This document shows, piece after piece, positions 9,701 to 41,169 of a stretch of 56,986 nt of DNA. The notes beneath the pieces were generated by a model, which was not told the origin of the DNA, did no database searches, and saw only the letters and a program-made list of their open reading frames with translations. Position 1 is the first letter of the stretch, and every line of letters starts with the position of its first letter. Origin of the DNA: Octopus bimaculoides (lineage: Eukaryota); assembly GCF_001194135.2 (NCBI RefSeq), contig NC_068981.1, forward strand, positions 40,560,905 through 40,617,890, written 5' to 3'. A program made the translations under genes and the position numbers.

Positions 9701-10355
9701 ATAATTTCTTCAATGCAGGACAGCATTATGCGATGAATGTGCCATAATTGCAACAAACAAAAAATACATTGAGAAAAAAATTAACAGAGATTTTAATTTA
9801 TTTATTTTAAAATTCCTTTTTTTACATATTTGTTTTTATTTGGAAAAGATATGATGACCTTATTTATACTGAACAATAATTGGCAAATTATAAATGATTT
9901 CTTCTCTTTCCAGGACTCTTTCTTTACTTGGGCTTGGTCTTTGTATATCTCTTATGTTCATATCAAGCTGGTATTATGCTTTGGCAGCCCTTTTCCTTGC
10001 ATTATGTATTTACAAATACATTGAATATAAAGGGTAAGATTTTTCTGTTTACTTTTCTAATAANNNNNNNNNNCATTGAATATAAAGGGTAAGATTTTTC
10101 TGTTTACTTTTCTAATAACACGTCTACTCATACTCTTGAAAAAGTAAATATTCATTGCCCAAAATACTTTTTCATAATGCTGCTCTACAAAACCTACAAG
10201 ATGTCTGTACACATGGGTACTCTTTCTCATGTTCTGTACTTCATCAGTAACACAAATCATCCTGTTGCCAAACAATTCAAGCCTCTTCATTCGTGAGTGA
10301 GTGTAAATACACTCAAATACGTACATGTGTGTGTGTGTGTGTGAATGTATGTATG

Positions 10356-10387
<32 letters not shown>

Positions 10388-11350
10388 AATTTATACATGC
10401 ATACCCACCTACCTGCTTGCATGCATACATACATTCACACGCACTCATATACTTCCCCAATAAGTGATCTTTTCCTGTTGACCTCCCTTACAACCTCAAT
10501 ACAGCTGGACTAACATACCACAAAGAAGATCTGGATATGGACTCAGGCCTGCTATATTGCATCACACTTTGAAGATTATGTTTTAGCAAGCCAAGAGCAG
10601 GAGATTGCTACAAAATACCTAATGAACAAAAGAGACAATGAAGCACTTGGAGCAGCATATCAAGTATGATCAGCAGCTGCCCAAAAAATGTCATCAAGGT
10701 ATTATCTATGCAACACAACATTGTTGCAAAAACGATATGCAGTGTTATCTAGAGTAAATACTGTTCTGAAATAAATATAGAGAGTATCCCTATTATTGAA
10801 TACATACACAAGCATCAATGCAAAGAGTATTGGCAGAATACTCTCATCAAAACTTCTACCAGGTGCAAACATAACAGACCAAATATATTTGTTTAGGACA
10901 GACATGTAAAGGTATATACCATCATAGAAATCAGCTGCACTGTGGATTTTAATATCTCTTTGAAAATCGAAGAGAAAGAGAATAGCTATAGAGAACTGTT
11001 TTAAAACCTACAGATTCTATATTCAGATTATAAATTAACATTTTTATCAATAATAATTGTTGCACTAGGTTTTGTGAGTACATGCCTAAGTGACAATTTA
11101 GAAAAGCTAGGAGTTTCAGGAAAAGAAATCAATTGACTAACATGCACATCATTAATACAATCTGTAAGCAGAACAGTAAAAATATGCAAGACTTTCCTCA
11201 AGTTCAACATGTGACAATGTTTTTGTTATTCCAATGATAGAATGTTGTATCTTTGTTGAAAACTAGTTCCTTCCTTGCAGAAAGCATTCAAATAGTTAAA
11301 AACCAAAGGGAACATACACACATACATACATACATACATACATACATACA

Positions 11351-11382
<32 letters not shown>

Positions 11383-17094: not shown

Positions 17095-17144
<50 letters not shown>

Positions 17145-19703: not shown

Positions 19704-19734
<31 letters not shown>

Positions 19735-22700
19735 TCACACACACACTCACTCACACACATGCATATACAACGGGCATCTTTCAGTTTCTGTCCACCAATT
19801 CTGCTCACATGGTTTTAGAAGCAATTTGACTGAACCCAAGACCACATGATTGAAAAGCAAGCTCTTTAACCACACAACCACATCTGTGCCTTATATATAT
19901 ATATATATATATATTTCATGCACATATATATATATATATGTATGTTTGCATGCATATGTATCTATGTGGAAGTTTACTTTTAACTAAATATTTCTCCATG
20001 GAACAAAACCAAATTCTAACTCATTTAGTCTAATCATTTTCCTAAGTAGTTACAAAATGAAGTGTGCTAGATACTCTTTTAGAGCAAAGCATGGCTTAAG
20101 TTTATCATTTCTCACTCATAAACCCCAGTCAGCTGGTGGGAGAATGGTACAAGTTCTCCTATACAGTTTTGTCATCAGAGATTCAGGATATGTAGTAATG
20201 CAAGATCATAAGCTCTGAGAAGGAGATGTGAGATCTGATTGGATGTGATCCAGGATGTCCTCATATGAAAAGTGAGAAGTGCAAGGATTGGTCACCAGTT
20301 TCAGCATAATGGAAGGAATAATCCTTTTGTGACCATATTTGTATTGAAATATTCACATCATCATCATTTGTTTTCCATGCTGGCATGGGTTAAATGGTTT
20401 CATAAGATCTGACAAGGCCAGGAACCGCACCGGGATCCATAGTATGTTTGGGCTTGAATTCTACAGCTGGATGCCCTTCCTAATGCCAACCACTTTATAG
20501 AGTGTACTGGATGCTTTTTATGTAGCACCAGTGCTACTGCTTTTTACATGGCACCAGCACCAGTACTTTAATGTGGCACCATCATCAGTGCTTTTGATGT
20601 GGCCAGTGTTTTCACTCAGACAGAGAGGCCTTTGGTTGCCAGTAGAGGTAAAAGCTGTCTGAACTCATTCCATCCTATTCTTATTCCAGTAATAACACTT
20701 TCAGTACATCCTCCTCCACTTCTAACTAGGTCACCTAGGTAGCAGAAATTACCTATTACTTCCAGGGAACCTCCAGGACATTTGAGGAAATCAATTTCCT
20801 GTGTATCTGTAGTTTTTATGGCTCCTGTGCATCTTCAGCATACAAATGCTACTTTCTCTGTTAACCTTCTTACTATTTCACTATACCCCTTTTGTATTAG
20901 AGCATGCACTGGGTACACTGAATGGAACTCCTACATACACTTTTCCTACATATCAAGCAGGGTCATTTACCTGAAGTGGGTGGGGTCCTGTCTGTTTTCT
21001 TGTTTACTAGGATCTTGGTCTTTGCTAAGTTAACTTTAAGACCCTTTGATTCCAGATTGTTTCCACACCTGGAATTTCTTTTCTAGTTTTATTATAGATT
21101 CTGCTATGAGGGCAAGATCATCAGTATATAGTAGTTTCCATGGGCTTCCAAATGCAGAACGAGCTGAGTACACTGCGATAATATATAACTCTAAATTATC
21201 ATCATCATCATCATCATAGTATATATATATATGCATAAGTATACACATGTACACATAAATGCACACATGAAAATGCATTACATGTAAAACATGCATGTGG
21301 GTCCCACAGGATACTTATGTGCGTACATGTACCACGTACTCAAAAAAACAGTTCTCAGATTCTATTATCATCATTTGTAATATCTAATATACGTAAACAC
21401 ACACACACACACACTCACATAATTAAGTGCACAAAAAGTAATGAAGAATTTTGTGGCATTTAATAAATCAACTAACTTTTCATTGTTGAGCTGGTATTTG
21501 GAACCTAACTTCACATTAGGTTTTTAAATAAATTATGGAAAATTTTAATTTACATATGAGAGATGTCCTGAAGGCAATTTCCAACATGTTATGAAAAGGT
21601 TTAAGTGGTCATTTGACTACAATTACAATAACTTTAACAAATTAGCCAATTTTTCCCATGTCTCATTTCTGTTTTTGTTTTTTTTTTTTTGTTAATTATT
21701 GTTCCTTTTATGTTTTATTTCTTTATAGGCACTTGATCATTTGATGGATACAGAAAATATTAAAGGTTTTGCAGATGTATTAGTGGCAAAAAGTGTGATT
21801 GAGGGGTTATGTCACCTGTGAGTACCCTTATAGACTTCAAATTAGAACATAAATTAATATCTTTTTATACCTTTATTTTAATTTTTTTTTTTCTTTCATC
21901 ACCTTCATCAACATTTAACATCCATTTTCTATGCTGGCATGGGTTGGGTAGCTTGACAAGAACTGGCAAGGCCAGGGGCTGTGCCAGGTTCTATAGTCTG
22001 ATTTGGCTTAGTTTCTACAGCTGAATGCCTTTCTTAATGCCAATCACTCCACAGAGTGTACTTGGTGCTTTTTACATGGCACCAGCACCACCACCAATGC
22101 TTATGTGGCACCTTAGTTTTAGGATTTCAGTTCTGTTGTGGTTGGCAGGTCTTTTCAAGTACAGCAATGTGCCACATATCTCAGTCCTCTGTCATCTCCT
22201 TCATAAGACTCAATGTTTTGAGATTGGTCTTTAATACTTTGTCCCTGTCTTTCACAACTTCCCTCCACTTTATGTGAGTGGTGCTTCTTAATGCACCTAT
22301 CCTCATCTATCCATATCACATGACCATATCACTGCAGTCTTCTCTCTTGCACATTGCATATAGTTCCTCTTATGCCCAACTTCTCTCCCAATACACCACA
22401 CTTGTGAAGGTGCATGACTCAGTGGTTAGAGCATTAGGCTCACAAGCATGAGGTAGTGAGTTTGATTCCGTGACCAGGCTATGTGTTGTGTTCATGAGCA
22501 AGACACTTTATTTCACATTGCTCCAGTTCACTTAGCTGTAGGAATTAGTTGCAGCATTACTGGAGCCTATGTGTATCAACATTTGCCTTTCCTTTGGATA
22601 ACATCGGTGGTATGGAGAGGGGAAGCTGGTATGCATGGGCAACTGCTGGTCTTCCATAAACAACCTTGCCCAGACATGTGCCTTCGAAGGGAACTTTCTA

Positions 22701-25700
22701 GGTGCAATCCCATGGTTAGTCATGACTGCAGTGAGACTTTACCCTTGTTGCACACTGACATTGCACATCCAGTGAAACATACTAGCTTCCTGAAAATAGT
22801 CTCTGAACATAACTTGACAACACTTTAGTCACTATCGTCACTATCTGCAACCACACCAACATGTAGGCACTAAGCATCTCACTGAAATATATCACACAAT
22901 AATTGTCCTCTATTCACTGGCTAAAATTATCAGAAACTTGACAAAAGTAAATGGAGACATTCTGACACCACACCCTTCATGTCATAAAAGTATTTCCTCA
23001 TAGCTGAGGTTTCTTCAACATCTGCTGATAGAGGAAACTTTCTTTTTTTTTTTTTTTTAGAAAATGCAACTGTACCCAACACAAGAATATCATCATCATC
23101 ATCATCTTATAACGTCTGTTTTCCATGCTGGCATGGATTGGACTGTTTGACTGGAGCTGGCAAAATGGAGAGCTGCTCCAGGTTCCAGTCTGAGTTGGTT
23201 TGGACTCTATGGCTGGATGCCCTTCTTAATGCCAACCTCTTTACAGTGAGTGCTGGGTGCTTTTAATGTGGCACCACATGAGCATTTTTATGTGACACTG
23301 GCATGAGTACTTTTTATATGGCACTGGCACAGGACACTTGCAGGTCAATCCTCCTCACCAAGGAGAGCAACCTTATCACATTCCCCCCACACTTTGTATG
23401 TAAACTCAGCAATGATATTAGACAGGTTTTAAATGTCATTTCAAAAGCTTTCATTAATATCATCACAATCATCATTTCATGTTCACTTTCTATACTGGCA
23501 TATGCTATATGGTTCAACAGGATCCAATCTTACAAGCCTCTTGTCCACTTCTGGTTTTCTCAATGATCACCAGATAACAGAACAACAGACTTTCTAAATG
23601 TTGACAAATGCCAAGTACAGTGATTTACTCTAAGCTAAATACTTCTGCAGTAGCGTCACTAAGAAGATGGCATCAGCAGTATTTCTTCCTGTATTTTTCC
23701 ATAACTTTCATAACTGGACACAGAAATTTGATACTCCTAAAATTACATCTTTCTCTACTCTTGTAGTAATTGATTATGATTCTGCTATGCCAGTCAATGG
23801 GCATGACATCTTACTGTATTACCTGAATGACTGACTGTAAAATGACGAAGTCATAATCTAGATATTTTTAAGTTTTCACTTGTATTTATGTTTTAGTCAG
23901 AAGAGGAAGGCCATTCGTTTTTAGGGTCCCCAAGAACTGGTAGAAGGGAAAGAGAGAGGAAGTTCTTCTCAGACCAAAGGCCTGGTTCAGATGTATGCAA
24001 AAGTGTACACTCTTCTAAAGGCACCTAAGAGCCAAGTGGTAGTGTTTAACTGGCCAACCATTTATGAGGTGCATTCAAGAAGTATTTGAATTTATGATTT
24101 CCCACCAAAACTAATGCCATGTGGGCAAAATCTTAGGAGGACAAATGCATGGAAATTTTTGCACTGGTGGGCCATGTCAGTTCCCAGCTGCTAGCCCTAG
24201 TGTACAGACATGTAGTGTGCGTCCATTGGATTTTCATTCTAGAGGTTTTACCAGCAGTGACAGAACTGCTGAGAAAAGTGTGTGAACTCCTAAAGGGAGT
24301 ATTTTGAAGGTGATTAAATAAAATTTGTCTTTTTTTATACCCAAAGGTCAGATGCTTTTTGAACTCACTTCATGCAACACTTCCAGTCTCTATTACTATG
24401 GCTCTTTCGTATTTAAAATCATTCTCTACTATTACCAGACCTCTGTCCATCTTCCCTGATGTATTTCATTTCCTACACAATGTTATAAGTAATGTATTTA
24501 AGTACTATAGTACTTAATGTTGATCTATCATAAAAACTTCAATTAACCATAATTATATCCATATTGAGGGAAAACATTGTTGAACAATGCTTAAGTACTT
24601 TACACAATTGTTTTTTGCCGGAATTGCAACTCTTAAAATCTCCCTACTTATAATTTCCCTACAGCCAACAATCTGCAACTGTTGAAAATTAATATTAATG
24701 AGACTACTCCACCCAAGTTATCCTTTTTCTGATAAGAGCCTTGAGTAGCTCAAGCTATTGTCCAGGTTTAGACAGAGATAGATACATGACACACACCACA
24801 AGAAAGATGAAGCAGTCAGTTATAAAAAAACTGCATAACTACTTTCTTGGTATATCATTGCTTTGACTTAGTATCCAGCTGACGATGACTTAGTTTTTCA
24901 GTGAATTCATAAAATATGTGCTAATGTTTTTCAAAGGTTGTATCAATTGTAACTCTTTCTCCTACAAAAATACCCATGCATGTAGCCAAAACATATTAGA
25001 TGCATGCTCACACATATGCATTTACTCTATTGTTCATTTGTTCATTTTATACCTGTTCTCCATGCTAGCATGGCTTCAATCATCAGCGTTGTTTAACATC
25101 CGCTTTCCATGCTAGCATGGGTTGGACAATTTGACTGAGGACTGGTGAAACCAGATGGCTACACCAGGCTCCAATCTGATTTGGCGGAGTTTCTACAGCT
25201 GGATGCCCTTCCTAATGTCAACCACTCCAAGAGTGTAGTGGGTGCTTTTACGTGCCACTGGCACGAAGGCCAATCAGGCAGTACTGGCAACGGCCACGCT
25301 CAAAATGGTGTATTTTACGTGCCACCTGCACAGGAGCCAGTTCGGCGGCACTGGCAACGATCTTGCTCGAATGTCTTTACACGTGCCATCTGGCACAAGT
25401 GCCAGGAAGGCAATGCTGGGCACAGGTGCCATGACTGTTTCGCTTCAATGAAGACATTCTTCCAGTTACTGACTCTTACTTAGTTTACAAGTAAGGAATA
25501 CCTTATTCACCACATCTTGAGATGTATGTATAATGCCACTGGATGATCCAATGATAGGAGAAATAACAGTAACATCACAATTCACTGCAGAACAATATTT
25601 GGAGAACCCCAATTATGCACATACACACATAACCACTGTACACGTGTATATACACACACACACATACTGTGCTTCTTTCAGTTTTTGTCTGCCTCAAACT

Positions 25701-28700
25701 ACATGATTGGGAAGTGAACTTCTTAACTACACACCCATACCAGCATCATATTACATGTGTGTGAGTGTGCAAGATAAAAAGGTAGTTATTAAAGTATTAA
25801 TTAGATTTATAGCTGATACAATGCCCATGTGTTTAAGCTCAGCCATCATTGACTTTGACACAACTGTAGGTGAGTCAAAGCACTTTATTTAGTTCAGTTA
25901 ATTTATGCTTTTATTAATTAACTATTAAATAGTTGGCATTAATTAAGAACAACATTTAGTTGTAATAACAAGCTGTAATAAATGTTATAGCATTATTTAC
26001 ATGTGACAGATATATGATATTAAACAATCAACTAAGAAATTAGAACCAACCTACAGGCAACCGTTATGCATATATTTCTTTAAAATTTACCTGCAAACTT
26101 TTCATTTTTAAGTAACACAATTTTTCGTGCTACTTTTTATGAAATTGTACTGGCAACTCCTGTTACATATGAAACTCATTCATAAGATATTAAAAGTTCT
26201 TCTGCTTTTTGTTTTTCTCTTGTCTTTTTTAATACCAAACAGTATTTTTACATCTTATATTCAAATTTAGTGAACAATGCTAGAGTAATTTAAAAACTGA
26301 ATGACAAAAAATATTTTCAATGGTGTGTATGTGTGTGTGTGTATGTGTGTTATATTAAGTAAAAATGAAAGAAATCTAAGATAATTTCTTGCAGTTGAAA
26401 TAATCCAAACATTTCAATGTTTACAATTTTACAGAACCCAAACAGCTGGCCTCGGTGGTTTGAAACATAACACAATTATGATCGGATGGCCCTATGGATG
26501 GAGACATAGTCCTGAGCAGAAGAGCTACAGGGTCTTTATAGGTAAACCAATTAATCTCAAAATAATTACTACTGTGATGTCTTGGCTCTTTTATTTTGAA
26601 AACTTTATTACCTTGCTTCTGATGGTTGGCATCAGAAAGGATGATCAGTTTTAAAAATCACTGCCTCATCTGATCCATGCAAGCATGGAAAAGTATACAT
26701 GAAAACAGTGGTGCTGATGGACTTCCTCATATTTAAGAGGATTGTATACATCTCCTTTCTTGCCTTCTTAACTGTCTGTGAGGTTATTATTATCATTATT
26801 ATTAATACCCCACCACTTTATATCTGTCTCTGTATTGTCCCCTCATCCTTCGCCCTTGCGGCAAATAAATGAAATCATTATTGTAATTATTATTATTATT
26901 ATTATTATTATTATAGACGTCGCACAGTATACAATATCATGAGGTTGTTAATTGAAGATATTGTACTGCTTGTCAAGTCACAACAAGGACCTCAGACAGA
27001 CAGTACTTTATGCAATATGTGTGCAGTTCCAAGCATGCCAGGCAAAAAGCTTAGCAGCATTTCATCCATCTTTATATTCTGAGTTCAAATTCTGCTGAGG
27101 TCACCTTTGCCTTTCATCCTTTCAGGATTGATAAATTAAGACTAGCGAAACACTAATGTCACTGTGATCAACTAGTTCCCTACCCCCAAATTTCAGGCTT
27201 TGTGCCTATAGTATAAAGGTTAATTATCATTATTCATTAATCATATGTCACATGTTACTCTCATCTATCTGAATATATGATAGCTTTAGTTACATATGTT
27301 AGTCTTGTATCTATTTTCAAACATAGGCCTTTGCTAAACTTTTGGTTCATGGATGATATATTTATGTCCCATCCAAACTATTATCTTGTCCTAGTGACTT
27401 TAATATTTATCACTACTCTCATAGTTAAGAATATAATTGATATTGTGTTACCATTACTTGCATGAAGAAACATAATAAAAATTTCTGCCAAATAAAATTA
27501 TAAATTCATACTCATCAACTCTCAATGATGTTGAAGTAGATACTAAGACAAGAGTCTGACAACTGGATTAACAAAGGTCCTTAATTATGCATTTAAGGGA
27601 TTTCTAATACACAGCTATCAACTATACACTGTTTAATCTTTTTTAATTACCAGTTTTCGTTATATGACTGTCGCAACATAACTGATGACTACATCAAACT
27701 AGAACTCGCCACACTTCAGAAAATATCCTCTGCCATCTCGTGTTATTCACTCCACAATTTTTATCATCTTCTGTGTCTCTCTCTTAAATGTGTCCTACAC
27801 ATCTGGTTTTAGCAAGCCCATGCTATCTTTATTCCTGTTCATATTATATTTGTCTTGATCTTTAAACATATGTTGATGACTATCATGTATGAAGATATGA
27901 TAAAAGTGTCCTTTTGAGTTGTGTCTTAAATGTGAATACTAATTTAATACGATAAAAAAAACTGGTTATAAACATTTATTCAGTTATCAACAAACATTTT
28001 TCTTTTAAAATTTCTTTTTGGCTTAAATGTAATTATGTTTTTTTATATTTCTTTATAGACACCATCAGGAATGTTGCTGGTGCCCAGTTGGCCTTAATGG
28101 CTGTAAAAGGCATTAACCAGTTCCCAGATAACACGCAAAAACTTACCGGAACCATAGATGTCTGGTGGATTGTTCATATCCTTGAAATTGAATTAATAAT
28201 GTATAGAATTAATTGAACTAACACCTTTATCAAAGTACAAAAATACATCCGTATAAGTTAGAAATACTTCCAGCTTGAATAATTATATCTAAAAATCTTA
28301 ATTTTATTTTATCTAATTTTTTTTTTTTTTTGCATGTTTAGACAGATGTAAAAGGAAGTAAATTTTCCATTGTGTTAAAGCAATCAGAAAATATTTTTAA
28401 CATCATAACCTATAGATATCCTTATCTATATAGTTTAGATCCATCTAGAAGATTTACGTCTCCCTACTGACCACTAGCATACCAATATTTGCATAATAGC
28501 AATTAAAGCTGTTGATATCTTGAGCTCAATGGAAGTTCAGTGATTACTTTGGGTAAAATAAACATGCATATGTGTTTATACATCTACATGTTTAATCTCC
28601 AATTGATATAAGATGGCTGATAATGATTATAATAAAAGGTCAGAATTTTCAACATATAACTGGAATGTACGAGTGATAAAAAAATGTACCCAAGAATTCA

Positions 28701-31700
28701 TTTAAGGTAAACCAGAGAAGCATGATCTCAAATAGCAAAATAATTATAATACCAGTGAAGAGAAAGTGTCCGATATTTTGTCTTTATTTTAACATCTGTT
28801 TGGTGCCATGGAGAAAGCATCTACGCCATGTAAAAGCACCCATGCCACTGCTGCATAAAAGCACCCAGTATACTCTATAAAGTGGTTGGTATTAGGAAGG
28901 GCATTCAGCCATTGAAACCATGCCAAAACAGACATGGATCCCAAGCAGCTCTTCAGCCAACATGGAAAATGGACATTAAATGACGATGATTTCCTGTTCT
29001 AGATTGGATGAGGAGTTTAAGAAATACTGATTTTTATTGTATTTGTATTATTGACAATATTTTATTAAGGTTTATTATGTGAGTATATAAATTTAACTGT
29101 CAGATATTTCTATAAAAAAAAGATAAAAGAAAAATCTTAATTGATAATAAAAGAATGTTTAAGTAAATACACTTGAATAGTTATGATTAAGATGTTCAAT
29201 AAAATGTATTTGTCAATTTTATTTTTAAGTATCAAGCCATCGATATATATCAAGATCATTATATGAAAGTTTAGAAAATCAATTTTTTCTTTTAACATCA
29301 TATTGTTTTGTATTTGCTTTTTCCACGATTATTTCCCTTAATTTTGATCACATGAAGGAGGTCTTTTGATGTTGTTGCCCTTCCTGCTTAGACAACACAA
29401 AGTCTGGAAAAACTGCAAATTACGGATCTTCACAGTAGCCCGTATCCTTTGAAAGACCAAAAGTTCAACATTTACACCAAATATTTTTGATATCTAATTT
29501 TTCAGAGAATTAGTGTATATTCATAAATCTGAAGGAGGTTTTGTTGGGTGTCAGTAAGTATCACTTACTTTTTGAAGTGGATACAGCTTACATTTCAGGA
29601 TATACGCCATTCAATATAGTAAAAAATAATGGTTGGTGAGAGTGGATATATGCTAAGGACAGGAATTGGCATTGAAGAGGAATTACATTGACTGACAGAT
29701 GTAAGAGTGAGGTCAAGGAGGAAGGCTAAGAAAGAGATGGTTGGTGCGACAGTTGGCTGCCAAATCCCTGACTGCCAGACTACCTTAGCTAGCAATGTGT
29801 TGATTGAATTACTTAGTGAAGGTGACACAGAGAGGAATGTTTAGACATCTAGCGAGGCAAAACTAAATAGACAAGCACACAAAATGTTAAGCACATGTAG
29901 TCAGTGAGTGTACAAATACAACAAAGCATACTATCTGAAAGGAGTGGGGAAGGATAGGAGGACACAAGTTGTAAAACCAAGAAGTAAAAAAAAAAAAGTA
30001 AAGTGTTGAAACTAGAGGAAATGAAGGTAAATGTTCATACAAGTTAGAGCAACGGTTCTCAGTTCAAAATTGACCTGCTGTGCTTTTTAATTATTACATT
30101 GGTATACTCCAAACATGAGTTGTCTAGATGTGAAGTGGTGATCGACAGCTTTCAACAGATGTCTAGGACTTGTCACTCACATACAAAGTCTTGCAGAACA
30201 GCATGTGATACAGTGCATTAGATTAGCAAAAGTGCAATCAAAATGGTCAAAAACATGGGTAGTTTACTTGAAGCCATATAGAGTAATAATGCTGGGGTTG
30301 AAGTGGGAAATATAGCATTAAGTGCAGGAGGAGCAGGCAAAAGTACCAAGTTAGGTGTTAGGGACTTTGGGGTCAGAATGTTACAGAGGTTTTTGTCACT
30401 TTTGAAGAGTAGGTAAGGCTTCATAGAATATGGGAGCAGTAGTTAGGTCAAGCTGTAAAAAAAATTGCAAAAGTTGTAAGGAAGTGAGTGGAAGATGAGG
30501 ATGGAAAGGAATGTATGCCACAGGTAAGCAGTTCAAGACAGAGAAGAGCATTGGTGCAGTTAACGGTGTGGGCCTAGCAATACCAGTGGAAGATTGTGGT
30601 TACATTCAAAAAGATGGTGGGACAATTCTTGAAATCAGAGGCTATGGAAGAATAGTTCATTTAAAGCTAAATATTACCAGTCTAGAGAGTTTGTCTACAG
30701 AAACCAAAGAATTTCCTTTTCCTTCTATTCTCTATGAGTTTTTATTTAAAATACCTGCCTTGCTGAAGGGGTTGCTCCTGCTACAACTTACTGTGTCCTC
30801 ATCATTGTTAGTAATTCTTGACAAATCCCATATAATAAATACTTGAAAAAAAACAAAACTGAAAATGTAAGTGAGCTCTAAGGATTCTTTACATATGCAC
30901 AGCATTATTATAAGCAAATAGTTATTATATTTAGTGGCTTTTTGGCTGTTGCAACTTTTCCAGTCATGCTTTTTTTACACAGGATATTTTTTTACACAGT
31001 AGATTTTCCTACAAAATAATAATTTGGTGGTATCGAATTAACTGCCTTAAAATATTTTAAATGTGTGAGTGTGTGTGTGTGTGTTTGTTTGAGAGATTCA
31101 ATAGATAATCTAAAATAAACAAAATGGATTTCCTTTTGTTTGTATATTCTGAGATTGAATTCCTTTATGTTGACTTTACCTTTCATGTACACAAAATCAA
31201 TAAAATGATACCAACAATTTACTGGGATCAATATACCATTCATTCAGTTTTTGGTATTGTGTATTTGTTATTTTCTTAATAATACACTTCTTAGAACTGG
31301 AAGATAACAGTATTCAAATGGAAAAGGATCTTAACCAATACATGTATAACTTACGTATTGAAGCTGAAGTTAAAATAGTTGAGATGGTAAGAAATTGTTA
31401 TTGTCTTGATGTTAATGTTTTTCATCTGCTTTATATTTTACACCCTTTCAATAATGTTTTAAAAGTTTGTACAGATGTTATATTTCATCACAGCTAACAG
31501 TTGTCAAAAATCTCTTTTAAACATGCAGGCACAGGCATGTCTGTATGGTAAGAAATTTGCTTCCCAACCACATGGTTCTGGATTCAGTCCCACTGCATGG
31601 CACTTTGGTAAATATCTTGTACTATAACTAGAGGCCAACCAAAGCACTGTGAGTGGATTTGGTAAACAAAGAGCCTCTCACTCTGAGTAAAAGGTAGACT

Positions 31701-33633
31701 GTATGATGCATGTGTATGAACAGCTATGCTACATGGCAGTGAAACATGAGCCATGACTGCTGAGGACATGCATAAGCTCGCAAGGAATGAAGCCAGTATG
31801 CTCTGATGGATGCATAATGTCAGTGTGCATACTCGACAGAGTGTAAGTACCTTGAGATAAAAGTTGGACCTAAGAAGCATCAGATGTGGTGTGCAAGAGA
31901 GACAATTGCGCTGGTATGGTCATGTGGTGAGAATGGATGAGGATAGCTGTGTGGAAAAGTGCCACACCCTAGTGGTTGAGGGAACCTGTGGAAGAGGTAG
32001 ACCCAGGAAGACCTGGGGTGAGGTGGTGAAACACAACCTTCGAACATTAGGCCTCACTGAGGCAATGACTAGTGACCGAGACCTTTGGAAATATGCAGTG
32101 CATGAGAAGACCCAGCAAGCCAAGTGAGATCATAACACGTGGCCTATGCCAGGGGTGTAACCAGCCCAATTATGCATACCTTTGCTTCATCGGGCACTAA
32201 ACTCTGGTGTCCTTATTTTGACACTACTCTGACTAATACAAAACATATAAAATTCCTCATCTCAGAAATACAGAAATGTGTTTCTTGTGTTCTTTTGTCA
32301 TAAATAATAATGTAAAAATTCTCCACCTCTTTATTTTCTCAGAGTAATTCTGACATATCTGCTTATACCTATGAACGAACCCTTATGATGGAACAAAGAA
32401 CAGAACTGCTGAGTAATATGAGACTGCAGAAGGAAACGGTTAGTTTTCTTTCTTCTAATTTGCTAATTTGCCTCTAAATAAACTTAAACATCATTTATCT
32501 TTCTCTCATTATATTTTCTGATGCTGCTGGTTAGCAGAAGAAAGCATATTTAACCCTTTATTATTCAGATTTCTGTGTCGAATGTAATACTTATTTGTTC
32601 ACATTGATAAAAAATTAATCACACATTACCTTGTAGTTTTGAGATTTCAATGATGTAATTGTTTTATTTTTAGAATAATATTGTAGGGTAAGTGTGAGAG
32701 GACAGCTCTAGCTAGTTTGAAGATGAAACAGATAGAATATTTGGACCAGATATGACTGGCTTAAATGCTAAAGACTTAATTTCTGTATTGAAGCCGTTCT
32801 CAGTTGTAAGAATCATAGTATAATGGATTTCAGCTAAATTTAAACAGAATGTCCATACATCATATATTTATTAGAAAATATGCTTTTTGTTTCTAAAAAC
32901 ATTCATTTTGAAATTGACCATATCATCTAAAGAAGGTAATGAGAAATGGCTGCATACCTTACTGTAGATAAATATTCTACTGCTCTTTCTTTATTTTGCC
33001 ATATTTGTTACTCAACTTTACTATATTTTTTTTATGTGCAATGTACATTATTATTATTATTATTATTATTATTATCATTACTATTATTAGGTGCAGACAT
33101 GGCTGTGTGGTAAGGCAGCGAGCTGGCAGAAACGTTAGCATGCCGGGCGAAATGCTTAGCGGTATTTCATCTGCCGCTACATTCAAATTCTGCCGAGGTT
33201 GACTTTGCCTTTCATCCTTTCGGGATCGATAAATAAAGTACCAGTTATGCACTGGGGTCGATGTAATCGACTTAACCCCTTTGTCTGTCTGTGTTTGTCC
33301 CCTCTATGTTTAGCCCCTTGTGGGCAATAAAGAAATAAGAAGCTTGCTTCCCAACCACATTGTTCTGGGTTCAGTCCCACTGCATAGTACCTTGGGCAAG
33401 TATCTTCTACTATAGCCTCAAGGTGGTGAGCTGGCAGAATCGTTAGCATGCCATGTGAAATGCTTAGTGGCATTTCATCACACTTTACGTTCTGAGTTCA
33501 AATTCCACCAAGGTCAACTTTGCCATTCATCCTTTCAGGGTTGATAAATTAAGTACCAGTAAAAAACTGGGGCCAGTGTACTCAACTAGTCCTCTCCCAA
33601 CAATTTTCAGGCTTTGTGCCTTTAGTAAAAAGG

Positions 33634-33672
<39 letters not shown>

Positions 33673-34985
33673 ATTATTATTATTATTATTATCATTATTA
33701 TTATTAAAGCAACAAGCTAACAAAATTGTTAGCATGCCAGGCAAAATGCTTAGTCGCATTTTGTCTCTCTTTGTTTTAAGTTCAAATTCTGCTGAGGAAA
33801 TAAGTACCCGTTGAGTACTGGGGTCATTGTAATCAACTTACCCCCTCACCTGAACTTACTGGCCTTGTGCCAAAATTTGAAGCCATTACTACTACTACTA
33901 TTACATATAATAAACTATCAATGTCTTCTCAGTTATTGTGAGCCCATAATACCAAAAGTTTACTGCCTGTGAAACTATACTATAATGATTATACAACATT
34001 AAGAGACTTAATCTTGCATTACTTATTCCTTCTTTTCTAAAACTCTCTCTAACATTCTACCAATCTAATTGTAATTAGCATTTACTCCTGGCTGATAATT
34101 TCTCTCTGTTTTCTCCAGTACACTCCATAAACAAAATTTGGATGCATCAGATCCAAAACACTCCTTTTTTCACTGCCATTTAACTACAGCTGCTTTTCTC
34201 CACATTAAAGTATAGTCATAAGTTTTCAGACTTATTAGGTTAAAGTGATAGTCACTGTACATAAATTCTCTTTTATAGTTAATCAGTTAAATGTATAAGT
34301 GTGGTATTTTCATACTACATAACAGATTATTATGAATTTACTTAACTTTTCTAAATAATCATAATTCATTAACCTTTGGCAGACAATTATGTTTGTTCTA
34401 ACTTTCTGGTGTTTGTTGTATTTTTGCATTGTAGGCTCAGTCTATAATTGATCGTGCTCATAACCCTACTTCTCTGGAGTCAAAAGATGCGACATTGGAA
34501 ACAGTTGTTGAAGAGGCCATTGAATTCAATGATGCTGCCAATTCACTAGAACTTGACCGAAGTCAATACACATTTTCTCCATCAGAAGCAAAATCACTTG
34601 GAAAAGAATTAGGGAAAGAACTTTTCCAAATGAAACCGTTAGTATCGAATTATTCTATTTGCTAACTTTGTGAAAATTTTCAAGATTATTTCTTTTTTAT
34701 AATTTTTGCTGATTTTTCTTTAATGATAAACAAATTGTTTATTTTCTTTTGAACTTTTAAACTAATATAATTGAACTTGTAAGGTGTCCTCTTTCTCTTT
34801 TTACTCATCCTGCTCAATACAAGTGCCAAATTTCCTATGTTGAAGTCCTTACTATCTTTAAAATGCAGACGACAGGAAGGTTTCCCAACCACATGGTTCC
34901 AGGTTCAATCCCACTGCATGACACCTTAAGCAATTGTTTTCTACTATAGTCTTAGGCCAACCAAAGCCCTGTGAATGGATTTGGT

Positions 34986-35032
<47 letters not shown>

Positions 35033-38000
35033 CTGTCTGTCTGTCTTTGTCCCTCACCACTGCTTGATAGCTGGTGTTGATATGTTTACATCCTCATAAC
35101 TTAGCAGTTCAGTAAAGGAGACCAATTGAATAAGTTCCAAGCTTTAAAAAATAATAAGTGTTGGGGGTTGATTAATTCAATGAAAAATTCTCCAAGGCAA
35201 TGCTCCAACATGACTACAGTCTAATGACTGAAACAAGCAGAAGATAAAAGATAAACAACCATTGCCTCTGTATGTACCATAGGTTTGCTCAAGCATGGTT
35301 GACTTGATTTGCTCAATATATTGCTATTAGAGAAATATGATGAAATAATATTGTTTATTATGTTGTCTTGTATAAATGCAGATAGACCAAGTGGTTTCAG
35401 ATGCAGTTCCATGGCATAGCACCTTGAGCAACTGTCTTCTACTATACCCCCAGGCTGACCAAAGCCAAGTGGTTTTGGTAGGCAAAAATTGAAAAATGAA
35501 ACCCATCTTGTGTGTGTGTGTGTGTGTGTGTGTGTTTACTATTGTACTACTCACTACTACAAAATTGTGACCTACGAATGGTGGTTCTGTTGTCACACAT
35601 ATCCACAAATTATCCACTAACTTTGTACTTTTGAAGCTGAATGGAATAAGTAACTAATTTCTTGTGAAAGAAATAAAGGTTAGAGTCAAGAAGCACAGGT
35701 GGTTGTAAAACAATGCCTCAATGTCATATTCATCTAATCCATGCCAGCATAAAAAAAATACAAAAAAACAAAGGAACAAAGTACTTGTAATGTTCTCAAT
35801 CAGAAGATGTCAAAAGGGTAGTATTTTCAGATCTTTCACTTTTGAATCATTAATATTTAATGTCTGTTTTCCATGCTGCCATGGGTTGGATGGCTTGACA
35901 GAAACTGGTAAGGCTAGGGACTGCACTGTATTCCATAGTCTGTTTTGGCTTGGTTTCTATGGTTGGATGCCACTTCACAGAAAAAAAATTCTGTTTACAT
36001 GTCTCAAGTTATAAACGTTTTTATTTCTCATAAACATGGCTTTGGGTTCGGGTCTAATGTGTAGCACCTTTGGCAAATGTACTCTACAATAGTACTGGAC
36101 TAACCAAAACCTTGTGAGTGAACTTGGTTGGTAGAAACTAAAAAAAAAGAAGTTCCACGTGTGTGTGTGTGTGCGCATGCACATGCTTGTGTATGTGTGT
36201 TTACTACTGACATTTGTTTATACAAGTTGGCCCTCCTTGTGGCTTCAAAGTTATGTGGAATATGAATATCTCTTATCTGAAAGACAGCTAATTGCTGGCA
36301 TCTGGAACAGCATTTAGCTGTGAAACAAATGTCTCAATAATATACATGTCTAGCATAGATAAAAACAGGCATAAAAACAAGCAATATTCACATATATCCC
36401 AAATTTGTAATAATATTATATATATCATCATCATCATCATCATCGTTTAACGTCCGCTTTCCATGCTAGCATGGGTTGGACGATTTGACTGAGGACTGGT
36501 GAACCAGATGGCTACACCAGGCTCCAATGTGATTTGGCAGAGGTTCTACAGCTGGATGTCCTTCCTAATGCCAACCACTCCGAGAGTGTAGTGGGTGCTT
36601 TTACATTATATATATACACAGGGTGTGATGGGTACATTGTTGCTATTTTATATTTTTAATTTCATGCATGCACATTGCTTGTTTCTGATTTTGTTGACTA
36701 CACAGTATAGTAGGGTCAGTTGGGCACTGTCTGTGAGAAAAACAGCACCATGACACAATTCACTCTGCCAGAAATTTGGAAACGATATGCTGTGCTGCTT
36801 GGCTTTCACGTCAGAAGCTCCGATACAAACATATCAGAATGTTTGAGTGTCAATATGAGGACAGAGCAGAGGATTCAGAATGAGTTGGATGAGTCTGATG
36901 GTGATTATGAAGGTATGGCAGCTCAGGAAACTCACTCTGATTGTTCTGATATGAAAAGAACTCCTGAATTTGTTGGTGACATCCAGGCCATGATTGACAA
37001 CGATCCCTTCAAGTCAATTAGGTACATCACCCAGGACATGAGAGTGTCTGAGTCTCTTAACAGGCAGATAGTGCATGAAGACATTCAGTATTCCTCATAC
37101 AAGATGAGAAAGGGCCAATTTTTATCCCAAACCATCGAGGACAAGAGGAAACAGGATTTTGTCTGGCAAGAGGACTCTACACCATGCCACACAAGCAGGA
37201 GAACCCAGTAATGGTTGTCAGTCAATTTCTGCAACCCCATCACCCCTTACATCTGGCCACCTAACTCCTCAGACTGCAACCCCCTTGATTATTATGTGTA
37301 GGGCACGGTGTTAAAATGAAATATCAGTGTTATTTTCATTTTTGCATAATTTAGATGACAATTTATTCACCATACCCTGTATATATATATATATATATAT
37401 ATATAAATTTTTCATCATTATTTAATGTCCACTTTTTCATGCTTGCATGAGTCATACGAAATTTGTTGACTGATTTACTGTAGCTAAATGTCCTTCCGGT
37501 CACCAACCCTTATGCAAAATTGTGATACAGCTAGCAGAGCATTAATAAGAGTTAAACGGCATATTAAAATATGGTCTGTCAAAGTAGTTTAACCTTTATA
37601 TGTAGAGTCATGAATCATGCATCAACTAATGATAGGAAGAAAGATAAAGCAGAGAGTTAAATAACAACAACAAGAGTACTGAAAGATAGAAACACTTGTC
37701 CAAGAGAATGTATCACCATTTAGATTATGAGGTTAATGAGTAAAGACAACATATGCAAAAGGTAGGTTATTGGAATAAAATAACCCAGACCATAAAAGAA
37801 AAACAATAAAAGTTGAATTGGTAAAAGAAGAAAAACAATGTAAGAATTATGAAACACAAAGGAGTCATCATCATCATTTAACATCTGTTTTCCATGCTGG
37901 CATGGGTTGGACGGTTTGACTGAAAGCTGGCAAGCTGGGGAGATGCCCCAGGTTCCAATCTGATTTGGCATGGTTCCTACAGTTGGCTGCCCCTCCTAAC

Positions 38001-40464
38001 ACCAACCACTCCAAGAGTGTAGTGAGTGCTTTTTACATGTCATGGACATGGGTACCAGTTATGAAACACTGGCATTGGCCACGAGTACAATCTCACTTAG
38101 CTTGACAGGTCTTCTCAAGCACAGTATATTGCCAAAGGTCTTGGTCACTTGTCTCCATGAGGCCCAAGGTTCAAAGGGTGCTTTTTACATGCCTCAAGAC
38201 AAAACAAAAAATATGCGTGCTGCCCTGATTATTATAATTGTTGTTATTTTTCAAACTGTGATACAAGTTTTACGTCATGAGGAAAAAGAGATGACCAACA
38301 TATTGGACACTTGTCCTTGTTTGGTGAAAGAAAAAAATGTGATGATCTTATCACTCAGCTTCAAGATTGTAAACGATTCATTTTGTTGTGACTCTCAATG
38401 GTACAACACATCCTTTATTTATTAAATTAATTTTATTTTCTTCTTGGTGTGTTTTTGTTTATTTTTTGTTTTTGATCTTTTTCTGAAATAGTGATAAAAA
38501 GAATGTACGAAGAATGCACACAGCAGTAAAACTGAATGAAGTAATTGTTGAGAAATCCCATGAAGCACAGCTTGTCATATTAAACCTACCAACACCTCCC
38601 AGAACTGAATCTGGAGAACAAAACTGTATCCTTTCTTTAAAACCACTTTTATCTTTCAGTCTTTGAAATTTCAATTCATATTCTAAATATATTTCAACTG
38701 GGATAACCACAAAACTAGGCTCATTAAGTGCAGCTTAGTGTTTTAAATGCAACAATAGAATTTTTTTTACAACCATCGGAGCACAAAGCACTCCACATGG
38801 ACACAAGTTCATGACATAGTTGTGATCTGTAAACAGTTTTGAGTAGAAACCAGAAAGAGAAGTACGAAGATGCAATGTGCATGTGCACACTGAATATTTA
38901 AGATGGAAGAGAAGAATAAAACAAGTTATTTGATGGTCTGCTTTGCTTCAATTTTCTTGTTCTATTCTATTTTGCCTCTATGATAGCATCTGTTATTATG
39001 GCCAGAGAAATTTTGTTTTTATATAATTCAATGCCTTGCTAACTGATTAATAATAAAGTTTAGAAATTGAGCAAGGCAGAGAGAGGCAGATAAAATTATG
39101 TAATTTAGCCAAGGTACAATATTATATCTCAAAGTTTCATACATATTTCTGATCAAATAACTATGATTATAATAACACATAATATTTGAGTGAATAGTCA
39201 CTGGATGGCAAAGGAACCATTTCAAAATACTTAAAGATAATTAAACGCTTTCCCCAATAATGAAACATATTATATTTAGGCTATGACAAAACCATAAAAT
39301 GTCACAGTGACACTTTGGGCACACAGTTTTTATACCAACTTGTATATATCATAAACCAGTTGTGTGATGAGTGGCATATGTGAAAACTTGGACAGTAATA
39401 AAGTGTAGCAACAGCACTGCAATAAATATTCAATAAATATTTGCTCTCTATTGAAATCCTTTTCCCCATTCTCTCTTGTTAATTCAGACATATATACAGT
39501 TATATGTGTGTGTCTGTGACCATTCCTATGTTATGCTTACTGGTGTTGCAGCTCTTTAGGTCAAAGATTACTTAATGTTTTGATAAATAATCATCGTCAT
39601 CAACAGTATCATGATTGTTAAAATATGAACCAGAATGAAATATATATGCATTGGGAACAATATGATCAACCATGAAAAAGAATTTTGAAGGTGATGCATC
39701 AACATAATGATTTGTAACATAGGCATATGGCTTGAAATTTCAGGAAAAGAATGTTAGTTAACTAAATCAACCTCAGTACTTGACTAGTACTTTTTTTGTA
39801 TCAACTCCTGAGGGATAAAAGACAATGTTGTCTTCAGAGGGATTTGAACACTGAACATAGCAGGCCATAACAAATATCACTAAGTATTTTGTTTGACACT
39901 GACTAAATTACTATGCAGTCTATTGGCTGAAATCAGTTAAAGAATAAAAGAACATCATACTTGCAATCCTTCCAACTCTTATCTAACAACACTATCCACC
40001 TATCTTTTTTTCACTCTGATAGTTTACTTGCACTCACTACATTAACACACAGTAATGAAAGTAAGATAATCATAAAATATATCAGATGATGAGAATTGAC
40101 AAATTACAATCCTCAAATATACACAGGAGCTGTGACAGCTCTGTGCACTGAGGGACTTTGATGTTATAGATTGTGAAAAAGGAAAAGGAGTGTACAGTGT
40201 GTATGCTTAACAATGTACAATATGACTTTACCGTGATGCAGAAATCTTTATTGCAGTTTACTTATTTCTAATCAAATACAAACAAGAAAGAATAGATTAC
40301 ATCCACTCTAGGTGAATTTACACAGTACAACCTATAGCAACAACTAAAGATTTATTGCCTATTGTCTCTCACGCTCTTCTGAGTACTTAACTGCAAAGAC
40401 ATTATATTCACACTTTAACCATGTTTCTTGAAGCCTACCACAGCATAATACCACTTTCATTTAG

Positions 40465-40506
<42 letters not shown>

Positions 40507-40752
40507 TTGTTTATTCCATTACCACAGATCCAACAAAATATATTCTCTTTCACTTATGAACTTGTCAGCTGCCCCTATTGATTCCATGAGCAAAACCATA
40601 TACTTTGTTTGACTAATGGTGGTTATGGATTAAATGTGCTGACACTCAGACTTCTGACTGAGTTTTTGTTCTAAGTGGCCTGCCCATATTTGTATGAAGT
40701 TTTCACCACACTAGTCACACACATGCACATGCATACACACACACACACATAC

Positions 40753-40797
<45 letters not shown>

Positions 40798-41169
40798 TAT
40801 ATATAATGATTTCACTTAAGCATAGCCATACTAATAACCAGTTGTTGAAATTCAAAATGCTTCTGTTTTAGAGTAAAATGCCTGGGAAATACCAAACATA
40901 ATATCAATTAATGAATGACAAATGAGCAGGAATTATATAAAAATCTTCTTGTGCAACACCCTATAGCTAACTAAACCCATTAAAATGAAATATATGCTTA
41001 TTTCAGAAAGTGTTATATATATAATTAACTACTGAATAAATGATTCTTGATGTTGTTCCTTAATAAACTTTCTACAGATATGGAATTCTTAGAAGTTCTC
41101 ACGGAAGGTCTGGATCGTGTAGTAATGGTGCGTGGCAGTGGTCGGGAAGTTGTCACAATATATTCTTAA
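1740..41169 (+). CDS. kcc: K-Cl cotransporter (KCC, SLC12A4-7 family), 3' part, 17 coding exons in window; 5' exons lie upstream of the window
   Basis: Manual splice gives 1865 nt (2 + 621 codons incl. stop) with consistent phases and KCC motifs [98 protein letters not shown]. Confidence 0.97.
2490..2780 (-). mobile_element. Possible CR1-group LINE 3' relic
   Basis: Minus strand [10 protein letters not shown] resembles LWNSLP..VFP; weak. Confidence 0.4.
3945..4335 (+). mobile_element. RTE 3'UTR copy with ~3.5 internal ~62-bp tandem units; similar copy at 25080-25445 (-)
   Basis: Repeated gtgccggtggcac-taaaaagcacc units upstream of the (GAT)n tail. Confidence 0.8.
4692..4800. repeat. (TATG)n(GATA)n compound microsatellite
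   Basis: Direct reading. Confidence 0.95.
5029..5147 (+). CDS. kcc: KCC exon [39 protein letters not shown]
   Basis: aatag|, |gtttga, 119 nt. Confidence 0.96.
5580..6140 (+). mobile_element. Degraded non-LTR retrotransposon post-RT region (possibly Ingi/Vingi-like)
   Basis: [23 protein letters not shown]...GIAPPIIRR and [12 protein letters not shown] across frameshifts. Confidence 0.7.
6560..6950. repeat. (CT)n-rich compound microsatellite with an N-gap at 6599-6608
   Basis: Direct reading. Confidence 0.95.
7215..7389 (+). CDS. kcc: KCC exon [12 protein letters not shown]...[11 protein letters not shown]
   Basis: ctag|, |gtaagt, 175 nt. Confidence 0.96.
7804..8117 (-). mobile_element. tRNA-derived SINE with the family A head and a different (V-domain-like) 3' module
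   Basis: 11-bp TSD ACTGTCCAAGG; 3' part reads gcgatggactggcatcccgtacag...ccatagaaaccagg on the minus strand. Confidence 0.85.
8301..8399 (+). CDS. kcc: KCC exon [33 protein letters not shown]
   Basis: acaag|, |gtaagt, 99 nt. Confidence 0.96.
8828..9048. mobile_element. hAT-like MITE
   Basis: TIRs cagtggttttcaac / gttgagaaaccaatg; 6 of 8 matching TSD-like flanks. Confidence 0.6.
9914..10033 (+). CDS. kcc: KCC exon [40 protein letters not shown]
   Basis: tttccag|, |gtaaga, 120 nt. Confidence 0.96.
10520..11180 (+). mobile_element. Degraded RLE-type non-LTR retrotransposon (R4/Dong-like) C-terminus
   Basis: [24 protein letters not shown], a decayed CPKMS..HNIVAK segment, and [28 protein letters not shown]. 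Confidence 0.75.
11474..11578 (+). CDS. kcc: KCC exon [35 protein letters not shown]
   Basis: caacag|, |gtacgt, 105 nt. Confidence 0.96.
11795..12165 (+). mobile_element. Helentron-associated (DINE-1-like) non-autonomous element
   Basis: 5' hairpin ACCTCCGCC..GGCAGAGGT, (GTTT)n tract, 3' sub-terminal agtggaggt, short hairpin GCAC..GTGC, T-rich end. Confidence 0.65.
12170..12553 (-). mobile_element. tRNA-derived SINE family A, full length
   Basis: Reverse complement of the 18969 element; 12-bp TSD GCTCTTG(C/T)TATT. Confidence 0.9.
13182..13404. mobile_element. TTAA-flanked MITE (piggyBac-like); related copies at ~690-860, ~1340-1460, ~7510-7690 and 18940-19520
   Basis: TTAA flanks; ends cctttttgttacc / ggtatcaaaaatg; shared body aatttagtaaaataa..ggaacataaatt. 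Confidence 0.7.
14768..14856 (+). CDS. kcc: KCC exon [30 protein letters not shown]
   Basis: tttccag|, |gtaaat, 89 nt. Confidence 0.96.
15007..15223. mobile_element. mariner-type MITE; a left-end relic of the same family is at ~51285-51360
   Basis: TA-flanked imperfect TIRs caagggagtactgaaaagttc / gaacttttcagcatctcctca. Confidence 0.7.
15691..16423 (-). mobile_element. Internally deleted hAT transposon (SPIN/Buster/GTF2IRD2-like)
   Basis: Exact 8-bp TSD ATTTAGAG; termini CAGGGGTC / GACTCCTG; relic peptides [19 protein letters not shown] and FGTTYVCE...RLTDEHL. Confidence 0.85.
16782..17070 (+). mobile_element. Diverged tRNA-derived SINE; a related copy is at ~22405-22745
   Basis: tggcctagtggttagg (A box) and gtttcaattccc (B box) head. 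Confidence 0.7.
17078..17143. repeat. (ATT)n(AGT)n microsatellite
   Basis: Direct reading. Confidence 0.95.
17297..17500 (+). mobile_element. tRNA-derived SINE family C; other copies at ~17143, ~27040, ~39720 (minus) and ~50555
   Basis: gagctggcagaatcgttag head, gagttcaaattc B box, core gtcgactttgcctttcatcctttcggggtcgata..agtaccagt (tentatively Meta-domain-like). Confidence 0.75.
17885..18250 (-). mobile_element. Degraded RLE-type non-LTR retrotransposon relic
   Basis: Minus strand [23 protein letters not shown]...[20 protein letters not shown]. Confidence 0.75.
18830..18909 (+). CDS. kcc: KCC exon [26 protein letters not shown]
   Basis: atttag|, |gtaagt, 80 nt. Confidence 0.95.
18969..19333 (+). 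mobile_element. tRNA-derived SINE family A, full length
   Basis: A box TGGCCCAGTG, B box GTTTCGATTCC; 11-bp TSD ACCTGAGGCTA (18958-18968, 19334-19344). Confidence 0.9.
21729..21817 (+). CDS. kcc: KCC exon [30 protein letters not shown]
   Basis: tttatag|, |gtgagt, 89 nt. Confidence 0.95.
21905..22380 (-). mobile_element. RTE LINE 3' end (ORF2 tail plus 3'UTR)
   Basis: Minus strand [17 protein letters not shown] contiguous with the common 3'UTR. Confidence 0.8.
24065..24372 (+). mobile_element. Deleted mariner element
   Basis: TIRs tgaggtgcattcaagaagtatttga / tcagatgctttttgaactcacttca; C-terminal relic EYFEGD*. Confidence 0.7.
26435..26541 (+). CDS. kcc: KCC exon [35 protein letters not shown]
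   Basis: ttacag|, |gtaaac, 107 nt. Confidence 0.96.
28059..28175 (+). CDS. kcc: KCC exon [39 protein letters not shown](H)
   Basis: tttatag|; ends at non-canonical donor |ATATCCTTG; 117 nt. Confidence 0.94.
28176..29351 (+). other. U12-type AT-AC intron
   Basis: 5'SS ATATCCTTG, branch TTTCCCTTAAT (29332-29342), 3'SS CAC; splicing restores [17 protein letters not shown] in frame. Confidence 0.93.
29352..29441 (+). CDS. kcc: KCC exon (H)[29 protein letters not shown](Q)
   Basis: atcac| acceptor, |GTATCCTTT donor, 90 nt. Confidence 0.95.
29442..31294 (+). other. U12-type GT-AG intron
   Basis: 5'SS GTATCCTTT; branch TTTTCTTAAT (31271-31280) close to the AG. Confidence 0.9.
29600..30600 (-). 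mobile_element. Highly degraded CR1/L2-group LINE RT relic
   Basis: Purine-skewed block; minus strand [13 protein letters not shown] resembles GSVLSPTLFLLFINDL. Confidence 0.5.
31295..31386 (+). CDS. kcc: KCC exon [30 protein letters not shown]
   Basis: cttag|, |gtaaga, 92 nt. Confidence 0.96.
31522..31680 (+). mobile_element. tRNA-derived SINE family B (CORE-like); other copies at ~19755 (minus), ~34875, ~35380, ~36020, ~50840, ~52280 (minus) and ~53120
   Basis: ggttc..ggttcagtcccactg..ggcaccttgggcaagtgtcttctactatagcc motif, usually ending in (TA)n or (TG)n. Confidence 0.7.
31780..32200 (+). mobile_element. RTE-clade LINE ORF2 C-terminus
   Basis: [23 protein letters not shown]...[40 protein letters not shown]. 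Confidence 0.9.
32343..32438 (+). CDS. kcc: KCC exon [32 protein letters not shown]
   Basis: tctcag|, |gttagt, 96 nt. Confidence 0.95.
33095..33890 (+). mobile_element. Stack of four SINEs (one family B, three family C), nested and tandem
   Basis: Family B head gctgtgtggtaag^aagcttgcttcccaacc is split by a family C copy; two further family C copies follow. Confidence 0.85.
34435..34637 (+). CDS. kcc: KCC exon [11 protein letters not shown]...[11 protein letters not shown]...LFQMKP (variable C-terminal segment)
   Basis: ttgtag|, |gttagt, 203 nt, open frame, phases 0 to 2 bridge the neighbouring exons. Confidence 0.88.
36619..37379 (+). mobile_element. Internally deleted Tc1/mariner-superfamily transposon (maT/Tc1-like)
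   Basis: Imperfect ~23-bp TIRs CAGGGTGTGATGGGTACATTGT / CAGGGTATGGTGAATAAATTGT; transposase relic with WQEDSTPCH and [16 protein letters not shown]. Confidence 0.9.
37865..38185 (-). mobile_element. RTE LINE 3' end
   Basis: Minus strand [19 protein letters not shown] followed by the 3'UTR and (GAT)n. Confidence 0.85.
38492..38625 (+). CDS. kcc: KCC exon [44 protein letters not shown](Y)
   Basis: aaatag|, |GTATCCTTT, 134 nt. Confidence 0.96.
38626..41077 (+). other. U12-type GT-AG intron (last intron)
   Basis: 5'SS GTATCCTTT; branch TTCCTTAAT (41056-41064) close to the AG. Confidence 0.92.
41078..41169 (+). CDS. kcc: KCC last coding exon [29 protein letters not shown]
   Basis: ctacag|; canonical KCC C-terminus; TAA at 41167-41169. 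Confidence 0.97.

Follow-up and report, generated by a model that had tools for sequence, protein, structure and literature searches.

How did a single cotransporter gene of an octopus come to carry several introns of the rare U12 type, and do these introns truly belong to that class? Well below 1% of introns are of the U12 type, and the reason why these persist is unsettled. The window analysed here, a stretch of 56,986 nucleotides (nt) from Octopus bimaculoides (NCBI RefSeq assembly GCF_001194135.2, contig NC_068981.1, positions 40,560,905 to 40,617,890 of the forward strand), begins within a KCC (SLC12A4-7-like) gene and holds its C-terminal, 3' two-thirds on the + strand. A sequence-only reading of this DNA had pointed to three such introns in the KCC gene. 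We demonstrate their sequence signals, the gene model in which they lie and the conservation of their positions. These three introns, together with a fourth that reaches the window with its 3' end only, are very probably U12-type and removed by the minor spliceosome.

The gene model was assembled from stop-free segments and splice signals. It comprises 17 + strand exons between 1740 and 41169, which form one frame of 620 codons with a sole, terminal stop. The last 601 residues of the translation align to residues 486-1085 of human KCC1. When this 601-residue translation is compared with human KCC1, KCC3, KCC2 and KCC4, E-values range from 1e-252 (KCC1) to 1e-237, and the match runs end to end (residues 1-601) for KCC1, KCC3 and KCC4, with a best stretch of 1-467 for KCC2. 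NKCC1 and NCC reach only 1e-64 to 1e-59 and are thus less close than the KCCs. The nearest database proteins are molluscan KCCs with 71-72% identity (Pinctada, Gigantopelta, Lottia and Haliotis). On this protein similarity, the gene is assigned to the KCC subfamily of the SLC12 cation-chloride cotransporters.

Three of the 16 complete introns (here A, B and C) are U12-type by sequence, and all three are of phase 1. Intron A (28176..29351) is an AT-AC intron that interrupts the His codon of WWIV-H-EGG, corresponding to approximately His853 of human KCC1. It opens with the 5' splice site ATATCCTTG at 28176, ends in ...TTTCCCTTAATTTTGATCAC at 29351 and has its branch site, TTTCCCTTAATT, at 29332-29343, with the branch A 11 nt away from the final intron base (the distances for introns B and C are counted in the same way). 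Intron B (29442..31294) is a GT-AG intron within the Gln codon of TVA-Q-LEDN, roughly Gln883 in human KCC1, with the 5' splice site GTATCCTTT at 29442 (longer start GTATCCTTTG), the 3' end ...TTTTCTTAATAATACACTTCTTAG at 31294 and the branch site ATTTTCTTAATA at 31270-31281, at a distance of 16 nt. Introns A and B lie on either side of a single 90-nt exon (29352..29441), which encodes (H), 29 residues and (Q). Intron C (38626..41077), also GT-AG, is the last intron of the gene and splits the Tyr codon of EQN-Y-MEFLEV, roughly Tyr1056 in human KCC1. Its 5' splice site is again GTATCCTTT, at 38626 (longer start GTATCCTTTC), and its 3' end is ...TTCCTTAATAAACTTTCTACAG at 41077, with the branch site TGTTCCTTAATA at 41054-41065, 15 nt upstream. 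All three donors match (A/G)TATCCTT directly at the exon end, where the frame requires the KCC exons to end, and each branch site resembles TTCCTTAAY. The three starts, ATATCCTTG at 28176 and GTATCCTTT at 29442 and 38626, were thus found on the + strand exactly where the sequence-only reading had placed them, and its assignment of phase 1 is borne out by the gene model. The 5' splice sites, branch sites and termini carry the U12 signature that it had proposed, and the match to the human KCCs locates introns A-C in the C-terminal domain, as it had said. Its estimate of about 10-15 nt between branch site and 3' splice site holds for introns A and C; the 16 nt of intron B fall just outside it.

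To score these signals, position weight matrices were used in place of intronIC, with 83 human minor introns (MIDB supplement, PMC6717393) as the U12 set and 87 U2-type introns of KCC orthologues as the U2 set. The 5' splice-site scores, given as log-odds of the U12 versus the U2 model, were +22.6 (A), +15.7 (B) and +17.2 bits (C), versus -16 to -27 bits for the 12 of the 13 remaining window introns that were scored. Branch sites scored 10.1, 5.3 and 10.1 bits for A, B and C, respectively, with none of the 12 other introns scored above 2.4 bits; that of intron B is the weakest of the three. Matches to RTATCCTT are not enriched in the window (9 on both strands versus 5.8 expected), and the significance of the motif lies in the positions of its copies: three of the six plus-strand copies fall exactly on donor positions (P ~4e-10 under random placement). 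The copies at 13684, 28416, 48521 and 50220 lie off the exon junctions and were treated as chance matches. A search for alternative junctions within 24 nt yielded no in-frame GT/GC-AG pair for intron A; for introns B and C, the stop-free alternatives within that distance only reuse the same U12 donor and lose conserved residues.

The fourth intron occupies the first part of the window (1..1739, + strand), its 5' splice site lying upstream. It interrupts the protein at TTSFV/Y, likewise in phase 1. A branch-site 12-mer, TTATCTTTAACT, with a score of 9.3 bits is present at 1720-1731, and its distance to the AG (1738-1739) is 11 nt. The exon that follows (1740..1797, + strand, 58 nt; (Y), 18 residues and (K)) was located by tblastn with molluscan (Pinctada, Lottia) and annelid KCC proteins; it keeps the frame and is directly preceded by ...TTATCTTTAACTATATTTAG. 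At the same position, six of the seven other species compared below have a U12-type intron with a GTATCCTT donor. This position is that of the other U12 intron of the pufferfish Takifugu, and it lies beyond the range covered by the sequence-only reading (28176-41077).

For the U12 intron class, recognition by U11/U12 and catalysis by U4atac/U6atac.U5 are established. In this gene, U11 small nuclear RNA (snRNA) would be expected to pair with the (A/G)UAUCCUU 5' splice site, and U12 snRNA with the branch site, which is UCCUUAAY-like and lies 11-16 nt before the 3' end. Both sites would be bound together by the U11/U12 di-snRNP (a small nuclear ribonucleoprotein), after which U4atac/U6atac.U5 would carry out catalysis.

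Intron positions were compared in seven species by threading each annotated KCC protein, with an exact spliced-alignment script, along the genomic locus it comes from, except that the junctions of the sea spider Nymphon striatum were read by hand after tblastn. The loci compared include no mammal, shark, dipteran or non-bilaterian, and the vertebrate evidence is that of Takifugu and the MIDB tables. In the window and the seven species, all four positions are of phase 1 wherever an intron is present. At TTSFV/Y, a U12-type intron is found in the bivalve Pinctada imbricata, the limpet Lottia gigantea, the annelid Lamellibrachia satsuma, Nymphon, the sea cucumber Holothuria leucospilota and the SLC12A6-like gene of Takifugu bimaculatus, and no intron in the beetle Asbolus verrucosus. 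At WWIV/H (intron A), Pinctada resembles the window gene down to the AT-AC subtype, whereas the U12-type intron of the annelid, the sea spider and the sea cucumber is GT-AG; Lottia, unlike the window gene, is intron-free at this position, as are the beetle and Takifugu. At TVA/Q (intron B), the intron is U12-type in Pinctada, Lottia and the annelid, but U2-type in the sea spider (63 nt) and the sea cucumber, in contrast to the window gene, and there is none in the beetle or Takifugu. The N/YMEF intron (intron C) is U12-type in every species examined but the beetle, where it is U2-type.

Two of the public protein models run through a U12 donor. At WWIV/H of the Pinctada imbricata locus (37355-38077), the annotation continues through the ATATCCTTT donor, which gives a public protein with WIVHILCMLM; splicing out ATATCC...GTCAC restores WWIVHDGGMLMLLP. 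In the Nymphon striatum locus (~12717), the public protein reads TTSTVCILYQ, running through a GTATCCTTT donor. As public models thus misread introns (Pinctada at WWIV/H and Nymphon at TTSxV/Y), U12-aware annotation is needed for the KCC family. Parsimony further suggests that the WWIV/H intron switched from GT-AG to AT-AC within the molluscs. Switches from AT-AC to GT-AG are mentioned in a review (PMC3584512), and the molluscan one would run the opposite way.

Several observations weigh against removal of these introns by the minor spliceosome, and they have to be set beside the explanations that would replace it. The branch site of intron B is the weak point, since three of the 87 U2-type control introns attain its 5.3 bits. 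U12-type introns should lack a polypyrimidine tract between branch site and 3' splice site, yet the pyrimidine fraction of the last 15 nt is 0.60-0.73 in the U12 candidates and 0.60-0.93 in the other introns, so that in this AT-rich DNA the measure fails to tell the classes apart. An Rfam scan of the window returned nothing, minor snRNA genes included, and the presence of minor-spliceosome machinery in the species therefore rests on the mollusc literature. Finally, we infer the use of these junctions, and the removal of the introns by the minor spliceosome in this animal, from sequence alone. The lack of a minor snRNA gene in the window would agree with a scenario in which the U12-like introns are in fact removed by the major (U2) spliceosome, for instance after the minor spliceosome was lost or run down in the lineage. 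The beetle Asbolus, with an N/YMEF intron that is now U2-type and no intron at the other three positions, indicates that the signals can be replaced or lost. This same beetle illustrates, however, how fast U12 signals would decay without selection, whereas in all three introns of the window gene the 5' splice site and the branch site are near-perfect for U12 and rightly spaced. The AT-AC termini of intron A with ATATCCTT are moreover unfit as a U2-type donor, the U2-type donors of the gene being GTAAGT-like, and a relative enrichment of minor introns has been reported for molluscs (PMC10639083). Removal by the major spliceosome is therefore considered very improbable.

We give even less credence, to the point of near dismissal, to the idea that the motif matches arise by chance or from a wrong gene model, with the true junctions elsewhere. 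The RTATCCTT count close to expectation and the four copies that fall on no exon junction would be compatible with it. Against this, only the proposed junctions restore the KCC sequences WWIVHEGG, FTVAQLEDNSIQ and EQNYMEFLEV, no in-frame alternative retains the conserved residues, and the placement of three motifs on donors has the very low random probability given above. U12 signals also occur at the same junctions in five other phyla or classes.

If the introns are of the U12 type, are they old? The sequence-only reading had held their positions to be ancestral. This is supported, as the same codon and phase are interrupted in the annelid, bivalve, sea spider and sea cucumber; as regards vertebrates, of its three introns only intron C is shared with those examined. 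Introns A and B are common to the annelid, bivalve, arthropod and echinoderm genes and absent from Takifugu, the sole vertebrate locus. A review deems it very unlikely that a U12 donor arises from a U2 donor, while loss and U12-to-U2 conversion are documented (PMC3584512), which makes four ancestral U12 introns the simplest history. The KCC gene of the bilaterian ancestor would thus most likely have had phase-1 U12-type introns at TTSFV/Y, WWIV/H, TVA/Q and N/YMEF. Later lineages would have lost some of the four or converted them to U2-type, and the window gene would have kept all. The four introns thus appear to be inherited rather than new, as part of an old gene architecture kept across animal phyla. 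What tells against this history is that it assumes U12-to-U2 conversion to be far easier than the reverse (PMC3584512) and draws on one species per lineage.

The vertebrate genes provide a further point of comparison. SLC12A4-7 are known minor-intron genes (PMC7507305, PMC6717393), as the sequence-only reading had stated, and in MIDB mouse Slc12a4, a5, a6 and a7 have two listed minor introns apiece (PMC6717393 supplement). The exon-end contexts of these mouse introns are T(G/C/T)T and ACT, each followed by GTATCC, as expected for the TTSFV/Y and N/Y positions, where the T of the Tyr codon comes after the third base of Val or Asn. Intron C is identical in position to an intron of vertebrate SLC12A4-7 (U12DB, MIDB) and represents the same one, i.e. 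the last, of phase 1 and in the Tyr codon of N/YMEFLEV; in mouse Slc12a4, the exon context (ACT followed by GTATCCTTT) is identical to that of intron C. The vertebrate TTSFV/Y intron, with the exon end T(G/C/T)T before GTATCC, corresponds to the partial intron that ends at 1739. The mouse KCC genes and Takifugu have two minor introns each, whereas the window gene has three complete ones and the end of a fourth. Takifugu has no counterpart to introns A (WWIV/H) and B (TVA/Q); between these two positions, T. bimaculatus has a single GC-AG intron of phase 0 at LLRQHK/VW (3685-3791). For SLC12A9, too, a minor intron is listed, and the donor context there (ACT followed by GTATCCTCC) resembles that of the KCC N/Y intron (PMC6717393). 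The N/Y intron may therefore predate the split between KCC and SLC12A9.

The statement in the sequence-only reading that U12 introns usually occur singly is true as such, with the qualification that genes with two U12 introns occur more often than expected by chance, some 50 of them being known in human (PMC1557818, PMC3584512). Mammalian genes with multiple U12 introns include the alpha subunits of voltage-gated Na+ and Ca2+ channels (two each) and the SLC9 Na+/H+ exchangers (three). Like the KCC gene of the window, they function in ion transport, hold U12 introns in above-chance numbers and mix AT-AC with GT-AG introns (PMC1557818, PMC2831892, PMC3584512). Very few human or mouse genes have three U12 introns, all of them SLC9 exchangers (PMC1557818), and a total of four here would exceed this reported maximum of three for human and mouse genes (PMC1557818, PMC6717393). 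Unlike the mammalian multi-U12 genes, the window gene has two adjacent U12 introns that flank a single 90-nt exon. Phase 0 is avoided by minor introns in general, and molluscs have relatively many of these introns (PMC10639083). The minor intron of mouse Slc12a4 has already been used as a model substrate (PMC8848931). In the literature searched, no paper on U12 introns of KCC genes (kazachoc, KCC2) beyond list membership was found. U12 introns in SLC12A4-7 genes are already known; what is unusual here is their count (three complete, four inferred) and the adjacent pair around the 90-nt exon.

The remaining exons of the model also lie on the + strand. Ten exons lie in 5029..28175 (5029-5147, 7215-7389, 8301-8399, 9914-10033, 11474-11578, 14768-14856, 18830-18909, 21729-21817, 26435-26541 and 28059-28175), with nine U2-type GT-AG introns between them, the 5' splice sites of which score -16 to -27 bits. 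Between introns B and C, four exons (31295-31386, 32343-32438, 34435-34637 and 38492-38625) are separated by three U2-type introns. The last coding exon (41078..41169) encodes (Y) and 29 residues, followed by the TAA stop.

A dispersed repeat family has many + strand copies, both within introns of the KCC gene and downstream of it, and its translation repeatedly yields motifs such as CWHGLDGLT... Copies are located, for example, at 20348-20497, 21803-22021, 23100-23263, 25139-25480, 35709-36011, 36489-36656, 37853-38102, 51352-51554 and 56533-56925, and the family is probably a short interspersed nuclear element (SINE)-like or other transposable element. Long stop-free stretches inside introns 12 and 14 (31861-32124 and 36714-37208, + strand) resemble remnants of mobile-element proteins; Pfam gave no match for these two or for any other of the four long open reading frames scanned, which lie in introns or downstream. 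The window is AT-rich, with a GC content of 0.21-0.41, and contains runs of N and numerous microsatellites of the types (TA)n, (CA)n and (CT)n (~6570, 10064-10073, 48770-48800, 49280-49660 and 54755-54960). These microsatellites and the N runs, which are assembly gaps, mark it as draft assembly of an AT-rich genome.

Why would such introns be kept? One possible answer, in line with the suggestion of the sequence-only reading that minor splicing may be rate-limiting for this chloride extruder, is a regulatory role, in which several slow minor introns of a single transcript would tie KCC output, and with it chloride extrusion, to how active the minor spliceosome is (e.g. the level of U6atac). 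This adds to the explanation by inherited, minor-spliceosome-dependent introns and does not replace it. In its favor, several phyla have kept up to four U12 introns over a very long time, and a general model has been published in which U12 splicing can limit expression (Patel et al. 2002, cited in PMC3584512; PMC3728624). MIDB also records retention of the minor introns of Slc12a4, a5, a6 and a7 in some mouse tissues (PMC6717393 supplement). On the other hand, between one and four of the introns were lost in Lottia, Takifugu and the beetle, and the full set is therefore dispensable. A pan-eukaryotic survey argues in addition that much of the evolution of minor introns may be due to neutral processes (PMC10639083). 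Taken together, we regard the regulatory role as unlikely. Still somewhat less likely is the broader proposal that the KCC gene of the bilaterian ancestor had four phase-1 U12 introns, more than any reported human or mouse gene, and that lophotrochozoans such as this animal keep the full set, including the pair flanking the 90-nt exon, for minor-spliceosome control over the expression of this chloride extruder.

Across the animals compared, the KCC genes form a compact natural series, in which U12 introns number four in some phyla and two or three in others, while the beetle has none. This series is usable for studying intron loss, U12-to-U2 conversion and switching between the AT-AC and GT-AG subtypes, and it could serve to test whether minor splicing limits the expression of a gene whose product, an ion transporter, sets the chloride level of neurons.

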